Below, one piece after another: positions 30,822 through 61,830 of a DNA stretch of 64,000 nucleotides. Location of the stretch: the sequence record OP310984.1; one strand, written 5' to 3'. The notes under the pieces are model-generated. The model had not been told where the DNA came from and ran no database searches. It was given only the letters and a program-made list of their open reading frames with translations. Every line of letters begins with the position of its first letter. Position 1 is the stretch's first letter. A program made the position numbers and the translations under genes.

Positions 30822-31158
30822 GACTATTCTCCAAATTACGTTGACGTTCGTTCCATTCACGCAATTTGTCTACTTGGATATTACATAGTCCAAGTGCATC
30901 AGTTTGTAAAAGCCAATGTTCGGTCATAAGTAAGAAACGTGCTTCATTCTCATCAGTAACCCCAACAGCTTTATATCTATCTAATGCATTGATGATCTCA
31001 TTAGCTGTAGGTGGGGCTTCCACATCGCAAGGGAGAAGTAAACTACTTGGGATTGCAACTGGTATTTTCACGGGAGGCGGCACAGTAGTGCTCGTACATC
31101 CGTTTAGCAATAGCATTAATAGACTTATTAATGTTATCTTTTTTTGTGTCAGTTTCAT
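30796..31158 (-). CDS. o-spanin (Rz1-like) lipoprotein
   Basis: MKLTQKKITLISLLMLLLNG-C lipobox followed by TVPPPVKIPVAIPSSLLLPC; overlaps the upstream gene out of frame. Confidence 0.75.
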   Translation of the reverse strand: MKLTQKKITLISLLMLLLNGCTSTTVPPPVKIPVAIPSSLLLPCDVEAPPTANEIINALDRYKAVGVTDENEARFLLMTEHWLLQTDALGLCNIQVDKLREWNERQRNLENSHDPRGRSD

Positions 31159-31549
31159 GTTTAATCTCAGTAGTGGTGCTTTCCCCATTAGTTGTTTTAG
31201 CTTTAACCTCAGGCCATACAGGTGGAGTATATCCACGACCTGATAAACTAATGTACTCATCAATCACCTCAGTGCGTGATTGCGCCTGCTCTTTTTGTAT
31301 CTCTTTCTTTTTAGTAATTAGTTCAGCTTGAATTTTATCGGAGATACGATCTGATTCAATCCTAACCTTTTCTGCCGCTTCATAAGATTTAATTTTTCCA
31401 ATTAAATCTGTAGAGCGAACAAGTTCCGTCTCATAACTATTTTTGTAATATATGATACCAATTAAGGCACCTATCAGAATAACTAATAGTAACCATATAT
31501 GCAATGGCACGCTACCAATTATTTTTCGTATACCTGCTAATAGGAACAT
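31043..31549 (-). CDS. i-spanin (Rz-like)
   Basis: N-terminal TM (IWLLVILIGALIGIIYY), coiled coil, two C-terminal Cys. Confidence 0.75.
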   Translation of the reverse strand: MFLLAGIRKIIGSVPLHIWLLLVILIGALIGIIYYKNSYETELVRSTDLIGKIKSYEAAEKVRIESDRISDKIQAELITKKKEIQKEQAQSRTEVIDEYISLSGRGYTPPVWPEVKAKTTNGESTTTEIKHETDTKKDNINKSINAIAKRMYEHYCAASRENTSCNPK

Positions 31550-58507: not shown

Positions 58508-60055
58508 ATGTCAAGTCCAAAACAATTACTCGTTTCATGTATCACTCTATTATGTTTAGAAAATCGAGAAGATTCTCCAGTGGAACCATCCAATGAATTG
58601 GTTACTGAGATTCTTGATACTCTAAATGATAAGGGTGGTACATTAGATGTAGATCATGGTCGACAAACATTTTTAGATCTTCGTAATCTACTAGTGGATC
58701 TAAATAAGAAACAGAAAGCATATTTCCCAGCTACCCAACAGGTATTACAATCACTACAAGTATGTTGTCGTGAAGAAAGTTATCTATACGATGCTGTTAA
58801 AAATGCAGTAGAAGAAGAATTTCCAAATGGCATGGCATTAGCCATGCGTGTAACTTCATATCGTCGTGATCTAAATAGCTACTTAGCTGATGAGAAGGTA
58901 AAAGCTATTGTAAAAGAATGTTCATCAAAAATTCTTTTCAATAGAGGCTCTGCTGATATTCCGGCAATCATTAATGAAATGGCAACCAGAGCTGACCCAT
59001 ATATTCGCGCGCGTGCTGAAGAGAAACACCCAGCTGAAATGGGTGCACTTGATTTTGGTAATTTAGATTCTATTGAAGGCTTCTTTGAGGAAGCTAAAAC
59101 TATTCTTTCCCCAAATGGTGCTTTCCGTACTGGATGGAAAGGTTTTAACAGGATGCTTGGTGATCTGGGTGCATTAAAACGTGGTGAATTTATTATCGGT
59201 GGTGGCCTACAACATCAATATAAATCTGGCGTTTCTATGAGTCTATTTTGCCATGTGTGTCTATTTAATAAACCATACATGCGTGATATCAATAAGAAAC
59301 CATTAGTAATGTTTATTACTCTTGAGAATGAGATTCCGGATAACCTTATTTTCATTTATGAGTATATTTACGAAAATGAAACAGGTATCAAGGTAGATCG
59401 TAGTTCTATTAGTAAAGCTGAAGCAGCTGAATATGTATCAGCTCGTCTCCGTGAAAATGGTTTTGAACCAGTAATGTATCGTTTTGACCCAACTGAATTT
59501 ACGATTGCTGGTTTAGTTAACTACCTAGATACATATCAAGCACGTGGTTATGAACTACAATATCTCTGCGTAGATTATCTAAACATGTTGCCTAAAACTG
59601 GATTAGTGACCAGTGTAGCAGGTGATGACGTTCGTCTCCTATTTAGGCGAATGCGTAACTATACTGCACCACGTGGTATCACATTCTTTAGTCCGCATCA
59701 GTTAAGTTCTCAGGCATTAGAACTAATCAGGGATAATATCCCACCAGAAGACTTTGTTAAACAAGTTGCTAACAAAGGTTACTATGACGGTTGTCGCCGA
59801 CTTGGACAAGAACCTGATCTGGAATTCTTCTTCCACATTGTTAAAGTAAGTGGTAAGTATTATCTAACCGTACAACGTGGTAAACACCGTAACGTTGTAA
59901 GTGATAGTAAGCATCACTATTTTGTTATGCCGTTTGATCCAGACCGTATTGGTGGTATTAGATGGGATATCGATAAAGAAGAAAACAATTACATGGATTT
60001 CGTACCAAGTCTTAGTAATATGCAAGCAACTGGTGGAGATGACTGGGGATATTAA
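58508..60055 (+). CDS. dnaB: DnaB-like replicative helicase (gp118)
   Basis: FITLEN, CVDYLNML, SPHQLS and QRGKHR SF4 helicase motifs; P-loop variant GGLQHQYKS. Confidence 0.88.
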   Translation: MSSPKQLLVSCITLLCLENREDSPVEPSNELVTEILDTLNDKGGTLDVDHGRQTFLDLRNLLVDLNKKQKAYFPATQQVLQSLQVCCREESYLYDAVKNAVEEEFPNGMALAMRVTSYRRDLNSYLADEKVKAIVKECSSKILFNRGSADIPAIINEMATRADPYIRARAEEKHPAEMGALDFGNLDSIEGFFEEAKTILSPNGAFRTGWKGFNRMLGDLGALKRGEFIIGGGLQHQYKSGVSMSLFCHVCLFNKPYMRDINKKPLVMFITLENEIPDNLIFIYEYIYENETGIKVDRSSISKAEAAEYVSARLRENGFEPVMYRFDPTEFTIAGLVNYLDTYQARGYELQYLCVDYLNMLPKTGLVTSVAGDDVRLLFRRMRNYTAPRGITFFSPHQLSSQALELIRDNIPPEDFVKQVANKGYYDGCRRLGQEPDLEFFFHIVKVSGKYYLTVQRGKHRNVVSDSKHHYFVMPFDPDRIGGIRWDIDKEENNYMDFVPSLSNMQATGGDDWGY

Positions 60056-60109: not shown

Positions 60110-60478
60110 ATGAGTGCAATTGATAATTTAGTAAATACTTTAAGAAAGAATATTAGTGAATGTAGAAAGTTTAATCGACCCCTATTTGCACGTGTATATG
60201 CCGCATCACAAAATTACGATAAAATCCGTTATGCTGTGGCAGAAGAAGCCCATTATTTTAAATATGGTAAATATGCAGAAGGTAATAACCTCAATATCGA
60301 TGAACTTATCAGTGATCTATATCTGTACTACACTATCTATGTCGATGTGATCCGTAAACCTTTACCTGATCCTAATGGGGATTTCATCAGTATTGTAAAT
60401 CAAGATCATTACACGCATATATACTGGGATTTAGATCGGTGTGAATCTATTCCAGATGATGTAAAGGAGTTAATGTAA
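60110..60478 (+). CDS. Hypothetical protein
   Basis: 122 aa, AGGT RBS. Confidence 0.7.
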   Translation: MSAIDNLVNTLRKNISECRKFNRPLFARVYAASQNYDKIRYAVAEEAHYFKYGKYAEGNNLNIDELISDLYLYYTIYVDVIRKPLPDPNGDFISIVNQDHYTHIYWDLDRCESIPDDVKELM

Positions 60479-60479
60479 T

Positions 60480-60716
60480 ATGTACTATGGTAATGTTTAT
60501 ATTATCTTTATTGGTGGTTTATTAATATTTATCCTAGGATTGGTATTTGGAGGAATACTGGGAGAAGAGAACAATAACGTATATAAACTCAAATCCCAAC
60601 AATTTGAATACTGCGTTAAAAATAAACAATCAAAAAATAATGACAGTGAAAATATCCAAGTTATTAAAGTATGCGCAGAGTCTATTGTACTCCTATATCC
60701 GACTAATGAAAAATAA
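60480..60716 (+). CDS. Small membrane protein
   Basis: 78 aa; N-terminal TM; two Cys. Confidence 0.7.
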   Translation: MYYGNVYIIFIGGLLIFILGLVFGGILGEENNNVYKLKSQQFEYCVKNKQSKNNDSENIQVIKVCAESIVLLYPTNEK

Positions 60717-60723
60717 AGCATTT

Positions 60724-60743
60724 AAGCCCTCATAGGAGGGCTT
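60724..60743 (+). terminator. Hairpin terminator
   Basis: AAGCCCTC-ATAG-GAGGGCTT-TTATGTCGT. Confidence 0.75.
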
Positions 60744-60749
60744 TTATGT

Positions 60750-61310
60750 CGTATGGCTAATATGCTAGTGAATAACGAATAAAATCGATTATAGAGCAAA
60801 TTAGAAGGTATTAAAGGCATAAAGAAAGTCTATCTCTAGACTTATTATTTTTAATTAAAAAAAATATAATCTATACTGTGTCTCCTTTTAGGGAGACAGT
60901 ATGTATTAGCTAACGCTATTAGAATAATGCTAATATTGTTTATTATTAGAATAAGGATATACCTTCGGTATAGTTTATTATGAAATAAAAGCCCCTACGG
61001 GGCGATCCGATTCCTCAGTTCCACATTAGGTAATATTCATGAGTAATATTTAATTACCAGTATCATTGAGTAATACTGGTAATAATATACTAGATTATTA
61101 ACAATATGTATTGATCATTCTGATTAAGTCAAATTAGCTAATAAACAAATCAATTATCAACGAGTGATAACTGGTATTGATTACTAGCTAAAGAGATTAA
61201 TTAGGATATCTACATGAGGAGTCGCTACCCCATGTATTCTGGAGTTTCTCTTTAGCGGGAGACTTAACTCCACTTGGGAGCCGCTTTAGCGGGCGGCTCT
61301 CACTTAAACA
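60750..61310. other. Hairpin-rich non-coding region (candidate origin or structured RNA)
   Basis: No ORF; at least nine inverted repeats; bounded by inward-facing terminators. Confidence 0.55.
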
Positions 61311-61331
61311 AAAAAAAGAATTCAGATAAGT

Positions 61332-61351
61332 CCCTCTCCTAAAGGAGAGGG
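61332..61351 (-). terminator. Hairpin terminator
   Basis: CCCTCTCC-TAAA-GGAGAGGG, with a U-run shortly downstream on the minus strand. Confidence 0.75.
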
Positions 61352-61359
61352 GTTGTTTA

Positions 61360-61665
61360 TCATAGGCTTCTCCTTTCGGTTACATAGAACTTCTTCTGAT
61401 CCATGTCAGTGTATGTTACTATGAAATTGTCGAAGGGGTTGATGGATACGGCTAAACCTGCGTTGTTGACGTATCCTATTGTAGGGCCAGCCCAATAACC
61501 AATGAAGTTACCTCTACGATCTCGACATTGGATAACATTATCGGCTTGCGTTTTCGCAACCGACATGCTATGGGTTGATCCATCGGGTCTCTTGAAAAAG
61601 AAACCTACTTCCTGCATTCTGTGCAGGTCAGGGCTAACATTGTTAGCGGTAACTGGAATTAACAT
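61360..61665 (-). CDS. Hypothetical protein
   Basis: 101 aa, GAGGA RBS, flanked by hairpins. Confidence 0.7.
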   Translation of the reverse strand: MLIPVTANNVSPDLHRMQEVGFFFKRPDGSTHSMSVAKTQADNVIQCRDRRGNFIGYWAGPTIGYVNNAGLAVSINPFDNFIVTYTDMDQKKFYVTERRSL

Positions 61666-61733
61666 GATTGTTCCTCTTGTTAATCCAAGCCCACTTGGGC
61701 GAAAATGTTGAGTATTTTTTACTCAACGGCATA

Positions 61734-61761
61734 TAGCCCTACTGTTACAGCAGTAGGGCTA
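61734..61761. terminator. Hairpin
   Basis: TAGCCCTACTG-TTACAG-CAGTAGGGCTA. Confidence 0.65.
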
Positions 61762-61795
61762 ATTCTTTTATTCTTAAAAGTTTAACTGAATAAAT

Positions 61796-61817
61796 GCCCT
61801 CTCCCGAAGGAGAGGGC
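61796..61817 (-). terminator. Hairpin terminator (cUUCGg on the minus strand)
   Basis: GCCCTCTCC-CGAA-GGAGAGGGC. Confidence 0.8.
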
Positions 61818-61830
61818 TTATGTCGTTAAT

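Follow-up and report, generated by a model that had tools for sequence, protein, structure and literature searches.

What occupies the longest gene-free stretch of a phiKZ-type jumbo phage genome, and what are its many inverted repeats? The stretch was examined in a window of 64,000 nucleotides, which is the whole of the DNA analysed here (sequence record OP310984.1; positions are those of the window unless a phage is named). A sequence-only reading of it had left two possibilities side by side, a replication origin or DNA-organising site with an AT-rich unwinding element and cruciforms, or a structured non-coding RNA. We argue that the gap is probably a non-coding RNA island built around two back-to-back phage middle promoters 84 bp apart. 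The rightward RNA of this island is already in the literature; the leftward one is predicted from promoter, terminator, fold and conservation, and its first part is the most conserved element of the locus.

The gene-free stretch and its setting

The whole stretch belongs to a phiKZ-type jumbo phage of the host genus Pseudomonas. Positions 60400-61700 are 100% identical to a Phikzvirus isolate, and 60401-61700 match phiKZ 114331-115629, on the minus strand of the phiKZ record, at 98.7% identity; coordinates convert approximately as phiKZ position = 176030 - window position. Upstream of the gap lie the gene of the DnaB-like helicase gp118, whose end at 60055 agrees with the distance of about 700 bp given for dnaB before, and then the small genes 117.4 and 117.3. 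Downstream are the small ORFs p40 (117.2) and p39 (117.1), both overlapping an opposite-strand ORF of 101 amino acids.

61403-61498, plus strand: p40 (PHIKZ117.2), by match to phiKZ
61360-61665, minus strand: ORF101 (101 aa), an ORF call

Between the flanking annotated genes, which end at 60716 and 61360, the interval 60717-61359 is without an ORF, and no ORF of at least 40 aa was found to overlap 60736-61359. The resulting 624 ORF-free nucleotides are the longest such stretch in the window, the runner-up having 196 nt (ORFs of at least 40 aa). The claim of a longest non-coding gap extends to phiKZ as a whole, where the counterpart (114672-115294, 623 nt) is the longest ORF-free stretch of the 280-kb genome, with a runner-up of 530 nt at a 60-aa cut-off.

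All the inverted repeats listed by the sequence-only reading were recovered in place or within a few bases, and the description of a hairpin-packed region holds against shuffled sequence. On the plus strand, 61108-61362 folds at -87.9 kcal/mol (z = -7.3; 0 of 200 shuffles equally good), while 60745-61107 gives z = -2.7 on the plus strand and z = -5.3 on the minus strand, with no shuffle equally good on either. The description 'very AT-rich' is right relative to the genome mean (GC 26-31% vs 36.8%) and overstated in rank, the gap lying outside the 25 lowest-GC 300-nt windows of phiKZ. Direct repeats in the region occur as two-copy pairs only, of 8-24 nt. An Rfam search gave best E values of 0.09-9, all far under the family gathering scores, and ARAGORN found no tRNA within the window; one of the Rfam hits, to 'sar' at 61707-61764, is weak (E 0.09) and looks like chance. 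A sigma-70 promoter scan was rejected as uninformative, because the phage has its own polymerases and the scan returned fewer sites than in shuffles.

Terminators at the edges

RNA evidence was taken from the Logan contigs of X1, X5, X9 and X14, four RNA runs that belong to four studies; such contigs carry no strand, their ends are approximate and DNA carry-over is possible. The phiKZ terminator motif is a hairpin followed by YTTATKYYGT (Putzeys 2024, PMC10914365), and hairpins of this kind stand at both edges of the gap.

60724-60752, plus strand: intrinsic terminator of the helicase-117.4-117.3 operon, stem GCCCTC/GAGGGC, loop ATAG, tail TTTTATGTCGT
61309-61354, minus strand: terminator-form hairpin, AACCCCTCTCC TTTA GGAGAGGGAC, then TTATCTGAATTC and T8, just past the ORF101 stop

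The left hairpin (60724-60743) together with TTTTATGTCGT is a full match to the motif, and RNA from the upstream genes runs, in the contigs, to 60729 (X9), to 60750 followed by adapter (X5) and to 60761 (X14). It is a working plus-strand terminator of the helicase operon. The right hairpin carries on its minus strand, at 61329-61354, the phiKZ terminator tail TTAT and then T8, and the same arrangement of terminator plus T-run is seen in PA1C and phiPA3; plus-strand RNA crosses it with a small drop in depth, from 4.8 to 3.6 thousand. Of the pair of inward-facing terminators proposed to bound the gap, the left one is thus established by RNA ends and the right one in form only. Three minus-strand candidates (61354-61329, 61003-60981 and 60843-60816) were assessed by motif match alone, at 8-10 of 10 positions.

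The gap had also been described as a point of strand convergence. This is correct for the ORF calls, with ORF101 on the minus strand, and incorrect for RNA: plus-strand transcription from 61108 was mapped rightwards to ~61823, and convergence at the RNA level therefore falls at ~61790-61823. A two-way terminator, GCCCTCTCCCGAAGGAGAGGGC (61796-61823), is the real RNA-level convergence point and corresponds to phiKZ T051/T052; an additional 12-bp hairpin lies just upstream of it, at 61734-61761.

The rightward RNA

The right-hand part of the gap contains a mapped promoter and its transcript.

61073-61108, plus strand: phiKZ middle promoter P060, start G at 61108 (Putzeys 2024, supplement; also Wicke 2021)
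61108-61305, plus strand: non-coding RNA or 5' leader, 5'UTR_p40 (TU089), with a long hairpin at 61113-61210 and hairpins at 61211-61236, 61240-61272 and 61275-61302

In phiKZ, P060, which Wicke 2021 found as well, starts transcription at 114922(-), and the RNA ends at T053 (114725) as the gene-less 197-nt unit TU089, or reads through to T051 as the 715-nt unit TU088 (Putzeys 2024, PMC10914365). Grad-seq of phiKZ described the same RNA under the names '5'UTR of p40' and '5'UTR_p40', as a species of ~180 nt on Northern blots that sediments with RNA-polymerase and 30S fractions (Gerovac 2021, PMC8545117). Position 114922 of phiKZ converts to 61108, the G of AATATG, and the sequence 61108-61305 is 98% identical to phiKZ 5'UTR_p40 and sits right upstream of p40 on the same strand. 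RNA depth sets in sharply at 61106-61113 in all four runs, in each of which this RNA is very abundant, and the X5 contig begins exactly at 61108. In the Nanopore run X14, 61106-61269 is covered 27-40 thousand deep, the part up to 61310 14 thousand and the sequence beyond ~3.6 thousand; depth falls 8-10-fold past ~61305, to the level of the downstream mRNA. In X1 adapter sequence follows directly after 61306. Two natural variants, 61138 C>T (giving G.U) and 61246 T>G (giving a new G-C), preserve helices of the 198-nt RNA.

The segment 61108-61305 is the already published phiKZ non-coding RNA, with start, length (197-198 nt), fold and abundance agreeing, and it shows no difference from 5'UTR_p40/TU089 (Gerovac 2021; Putzeys 2024). 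The suggestion of a structured non-coding RNA is therefore correct for the right-hand third of the region, where the RNA is published and Northern-verified; to the left, a minus-strand RNA at 61024-60822 is likely. P060 thus initiates at 61108, and its product is a very abundant and tightly folded RNA of ~198 nt, most of which stops near 61305; about one in ten P060 transcripts runs on as the 715-nt RNA. In X1 the first 80 nt (61108-61187) are covered ~10 times as deeply as the rest of the 198-nt RNA (60-84 thousand vs 7-9 thousand), an excess that suggests a stable processed 5' fragment. The 5'UTR_p40 papers (PMC8545117, PMC10914365) leave aside the 390 bp upstream, a promoter-pair reading of the palindrome and any minus-strand unit, and it is to these that we now turn.

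The palindrome as a promoter pair

Two features adjoin P060 on its upstream side.

61044-61092, no strand: palindrome with 20-nt arms, 85% complementary; the arms read as the upstream elements of two divergent promoters
61024-61059, minus strand: predicted middle-type promoter with an A-rich stretch, TACT at 61045-61042 and start G at 61024 in ACCTAATG

It is the non-virion RNA polymerase of the phage itself that reads middle promoters of this type. Their features, an A-rich stretch, TACT ~20 nt upstream and a start G of (A/T)ATG, are found both at P060 and at the minus-strand site. The right arm of the palindrome is the upstream element of P060, CTGGTAATAATATACT; the left arm in reverse complement reads CTGGTAATTAAATATTACT, so that a second copy of the upstream element faces left. 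We scored the window with a weight matrix made from eight published middle promoters from elsewhere in phiKZ, and the minus-strand site (TACT at 61045), TTAAATATTACT-N17-G, obtained 14.5 and ranked first among 127,924 positions. Its phiKZ version scored 9.6 (rank 75 of 559,924 positions), which is above what eight of the nine known middle promoters obtain on leave-one-out scoring under a nine-promoter matrix. Spacing and start context (TACT-N17-G, ACCTAATG) agree with P023 and P029. The TACT box lies 37-38 nt ahead of the hairpin P2 (see below) in phiKZ, PA1C and phiPA3, and the minus-strand promoter is kept in the latter two, which are lineages without P060 and without the palindrome. Judged by its sequence, the big palindrome is best taken as a divergent promoter pair, two upstream-element copies placed back to back, a reading that is new here. 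BLAST reported a 'second place' for the element in many records; this was discarded as a self-match of the palindrome, and the element is single-copy.

The 9-nt centre of the palindrome (61064-61072) exists in two orientations among 15 Phikzvirus genomes, CATTGAGTA in four (this window, PA7, SL2 and FBPa36) and TACTCAATG in eleven (phiKZ and 10 others). The inverted centre sits 36-44 nt upstream of the P060 start and is a natural inversion between inverted repeats, which points to template switching through hairpins formed in the DNA.

A probable small RNA on the opposite strand

The promoter with TACT at 61045 would fire leftward from 61024 and give a non-coding RNA of ~200 nt, of which the first 80 nt would form a four-helix junction and which would end at the hairpin 60843-60826.

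60822-61024, minus strand: predicted non-coding RNA of ~200 nt, seen as a discrete X5 contig, the strand being a prediction
60816-60843, minus strand: predicted terminator of this RNA, hairpin AAGTCTA GAGA TAGACTT, then TCTTTATGCC

Run X5 contains a separate contig of 203 nt at 60822-61024, with a depth of 9.4 vs 11.8 over the upstream genes; around it, coverage is nil at 60778-60818 and close to nil at 61024-61105. One end of this contig, which is unstranded and has approximate ends, coincides with the predicted +1 of the minus-strand promoter at 61024, and the other, 60822, lies 4 nt beyond the stem of the hairpin 60843-60826, whose tail TCTTTATGCC fits YTTATKYY of the phiKZ terminator motif. 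Because the contigs are unstranded, the orientation assigned here relies on the promoter and terminator signals at the two ends and on the stronger fold of the minus strand. At least eight runs, from two studies, have RNA contigs that contain words of the segment, and three other studies lack them; X9 and X14 are silent over 60762-61105, and the published ONT-cappable-seq tables hold no start near phiKZ 115006 (window 61024). The hairpin P2 followed by UUUUAUUU is terminator-like and lies 20 nt past the predicted start; it might abort most or many minus-strand transcripts at ~45 nt, a length invisible to most libraries.

The minus-strand RNA (60822-61024) has no ORF of at least 30 aa and no AUG, and a small ORF considered within it was dropped on that account. 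Hfq/Crc 'AAnAAnAA' motifs, RsmA GGA motifs and a 6S-like RNA were likewise dropped, conserved support being lacking. We infer from these signals the strand, ends and fold of what is probably a second, undescribed small RNA, encoded opposite to the first in the left part of the gap.

A core kept across phage lineages

The beginning of the leftward RNA is also its conserved core.

60945-61024, minus strand: conserved 80-nt core, a predicted four-helix junction (BLASTN, RNAalifold, single folds)
61023-61012 with 60957-60947, minus strand: P1, 5' leader UGGAAC-UGAGGA with UCCUUA-UUCUA
61003-60991, minus strand: P2, GCCCC GUA GGGGC
60989-60974, minus strand: P3, UUUAUU with AAUAAA
60972-60958, minus strand: P4, UAUACC / GGUAUA

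The RNAalifold consensus on the minus strand is a four-helix junction, and single-sequence folds agree. A 58-nt island within the region (60938-60996) is found by BLASTN at ~90% identity in eight Pawinskivirus records (the PA1C group), with 52 of 58 bases kept, in the syntenic gap that follows the genes of the helicase and the 117.4 homologue. At the protein level the helicase is 63% identical between phiKZ-type phages and Pawinskivirus, below the island's ~90%. In the whole-genome comparison of phiKZ with PA1C (153 HSPs, median identity 71%), the island is, tRNA genes apart, the only single-copy syntenic non-coding match of at least 88% identity. The core architecture also occurs in phiPA3, Viktualia and 201phi2-1, each time in a non-coding stretch downstream of the helicase cluster, so that the core, single-copy in the genome, is recognisable in five lineages. 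Psa21 has a gap of 54 bp at this site, and BLASTN finds no copy elsewhere in the Psa21 genome. Within Phikzvirus, two of 137 sites are variable in 60877-61013, and 35-38 of ~210 in the 3' part of 117.4, nearly all of the latter synonymous.

The helices are kept in place as their sequences change. P4 is constant in position and has unrelated stems in phiPA3 (GAGUUAC/GUAACUC), Viktualia (GGUUAC/GUAACC) and 201phi2-1 (AUUGC/GCAAU), P2 is CCUCC/GGAGG in PA1C and phiPA3, and P1 of Viktualia is a different complementary pair, CUGUGUA/UGCAUAG. Three P1 pairs switch between G.U and A-U, a pairing possible only on the minus strand. The covariation term of RNAalifold is slightly unfavourable (+1.24), on a basis of five or six lineages in an imperfect alignment in which MAFFT sets the variable P4 stems out of register across six lineages; the compensatory stems were read directly from the sequences. 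When a covariance model was built from three lineages, it missed the copies of Viktualia and 201phi2-1 and found none in Psa21; it is too narrow, and its silence in Psa21 therefore means little. IMG/VR scans with the core pattern, the helicase protein and a gapped box pattern returned nothing, or phiPA3 only, and a metagenome scan found nothing. The boxes GAATAAGGA, GTTTATTAT and AAATAAAA would be conserved because they are helices of the RNA model, and since five phage lineages retain the leftward core, it is the likeliest part to matter.

Two further observations concern the same genomes. A second phiKZ-PA1C non-coding island, of 120 nt, is 81% identical (E 1e-21) and lies outside the window, at L031 11131-11248 (phiKZ 31131-31248). 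The gap of phiPA3 (L005 2885-3160) holds a rightward unit of its own of ~260 nt, which begins at an A-rich TATACT box, closes with a perfect terminator (…CCGCTTCTCCC TATCCTTTATGTCGT) and shares no sequence relation with the phiKZ 198-nt RNA. Within this unit lies an unannotated ORF of 21 codons that has a good ribosome-binding site.

The same hairpins could instead be a terminator or insulator array without RNA function, in which the minus-strand terminators of the left half stop stray leftward transcription, so that transcripts from the mirror image of P060 are halted before running antisense into the essential helicase operon. P2 with TTTTATTTCAT fits the terminator motif at 9 of 10 positions, TTAT recurs in P4 with CCTTATTC and in the hairpin 60843-60826 with TCTTTATGCC, and the region is silent in two of the four RNA runs. 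Another hairpin of the left half points the same way.

60873-60902, no strand: hairpin H1, inverted repeat ATACTG..TCTCC / GGAGA CAGTAT

phiPA3, PA1C and HPP-Temi each have a hairpin at the H1 position too, its stem unrelated in sequence (stems compared: GTGTCTCC, GGCGATG, GGCGAGG, CGCCTCCC; loops TTTTA/TTTGG/TTTGA), and in phiPA3 its minus-strand form followed by TTTATGTTGT is a perfect match to the full terminator motif. We nevertheless consider an array of this kind unlikely. Ordinary phiKZ terminators keep their motif and not their surroundings between genera, the 117.3/117.4 stems being different, whereas the island retains 52 of its 58 bases; lineages that lack P060 and the palindrome, PA1C and phiPA3, still conserve the minus-strand promoter; and the closing helix P1 co-varies.

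Replication or protein binding

The proposal of a replication origin with cruciforms gained no support. For an origin of the iteron/DnaA type, an array of at least three initiator repeats was not found, the repeats being two-copy pairs, and there is no strand-composition switch at the site. The cumulative GC skew of phiKZ, a check suggested together with the proposal, climbs steadily from 1 to 264 kb without an extreme at 115 kb; it shows no more than a small plateau at 110-120 kb, the place of a change in gene strand.

A transcription-primed origin resembling T4 oriF/oriG would have a middle promoter sending its transcript into an AT-rich stretch, where an R-loop primes DNA synthesis and the helicase of the adjacent gene is loaded, and divergent transcription would under-wind the 84-bp palindrome between the promoters. 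The locus resembles this in outline, with one mapped and one predicted middle promoter back to back and the leftward one aimed into sequence of 26-29% GC. The element is moreover single-copy in the genome and conserved across lineages, always downstream of an essential helicase gene (gp118, 0 Tn-seq insertions), a 2025 review describes no origin for these phages, and the inverted palindrome centre shows that the arms pair as DNA hairpins at least occasionally. Against it stand the skew and repeat results above, a GC content that is not the lowest of the genome, and Psa21, where the large gap is missing at this site and BLASTN finds no copy elsewhere. The left downstream sequence, moreover, is AT-rich yet folds as RNA helices with compensatory change, and conservation of this sort fits an RNA rather than an unwinding element. 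We therefore think a transcription-primed origin decidedly improbable, and we are a shade more sceptical of the further proposition that the minus-strand promoter, its folded AT-rich transcript and the divergent P060 unit together are the replication start of nucleus-forming jumbo phages; if that were true, the phage's own RNA polymerase would make the primer or R-loop beside the helicase gene.

The least credible reading is a DNA site for a phage protein, for instance to start packaging or to bind a regulator, with the two copies each of boxes GAATAAGGA and GTTTATTAT as contacts: the boxes are conserved in sequence beyond pairing and similarly spaced in phiKZ, PA1C and phiPA3, the element is single-copy, and the packaging and replication starts of these phages are both unmapped according to a 2025 review, but the RNA model accounts for the boxes (GAGGAA/UCCUUA is P1 and UUUAUU/AAUAAA is P3), those of Viktualia and 201phi2-1 change with pairing kept, and no binding protein is known.

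The non-coding RNA island built on two middle promoters remains our preferred reading. Given two RNAs and a promoter pair, the hairpins first noticed in the sequence would therefore be RNA helices, phiKZ-type terminators (hairpin plus TTAT) and a palindrome of promoter copies. Terminators of this hairpin-plus-TTAT form would also close the neighbouring operons.

Neighbouring genes

The phiKZ Tn-seq tables, which resolve genes and not the gap, class gp118 as essential (0 insertions) and show that 117.1-117.4 tolerate insertions; a further Tn-seq preprint and an ASO paper hold nothing on the locus. Gene 117.3 is largely deleted in SL2, OMKO1 and U5 (196 nt, window 60495-60690), where its loss effectively lengthens the non-coding gap. 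Among phages otherwise 97-99% identical, the 3' part of 117.4 (60267-60478) falls into two deeply diverged haplotypes, with ~35 variable sites, nearly all at third codon positions, which suggests mosaic exchange right beside the much less variable gap.

On the other side, the plus-strand ORF p39 (117.1) has internal stops in four of 15 genomes, and the minus-strand ORF101 (61360-61665) is open in all 15, with 10 amino-acid changes per 18 base changes; the control gene 117.4 has two per 35. The abundant plus-strand P060 RNA passes antisense through ORF101. Annotations conflict over 61360-61711, which may not be protein-coding as annotated.

Significance and relation to known systems

The abundant 198-nt RNA and its promoter were already in the literature. 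New are the divergent-promoter reading of the palindrome and the adjoining single-copy element, conserved across at least five Pseudomonas jumbo phage lineages, better conserved than the neighbouring essential helicase and probably an undescribed small RNA. To our knowledge, very few phage small RNAs are conserved beyond the genus, and none with a known role has been described in nucleus-forming phages. Deletion or knock-down would have a concrete target in this element, and it is the most obvious place to test for a replication start.

Several known systems offer comparison. T4 oriF (uvsY) and oriG (gene 34) consist of a middle-mode promoter plus a downstream unwinding element and are R-loop-primed; as far as we know, they are not conserved sequence elements. 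The phiKZ locus shares with them middle-class promoters that face AT-rich non-coding DNA beside a replication gene, the replication role here being hypothetical. It differs in that its transcripts are strongly folded, one of them very abundant and stable, and in a conservation of the RNA-helix type. RNA II and RNA I of ColE1 are opposed, highly folded non-coding RNAs adjoining a replication function. The likeness lies in oppositely oriented, folded non-coding RNAs beside a replication gene, a priming link being hypothetical in the phage; the two phiKZ RNAs diverge without overlap and so, unlike RNA II and RNA I, are not antisense partners.

Other phage small RNAs have come from transcript mapping, namely ncRNA1/2 of PAK_P3, 3'UTR_PHIKZ298 and 17 phiKZ 5'UTR-derived candidates (PMC10914365, PMC8545117). 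Like these, the published RNA and the predicted one of the present locus are short, structured, non-coding, laid out from promoter to hairpin and conserved within the genus. The predicted minus-strand RNA is unlike them in having its own promoter, in lying outside any UTR and in being conserved across genera.
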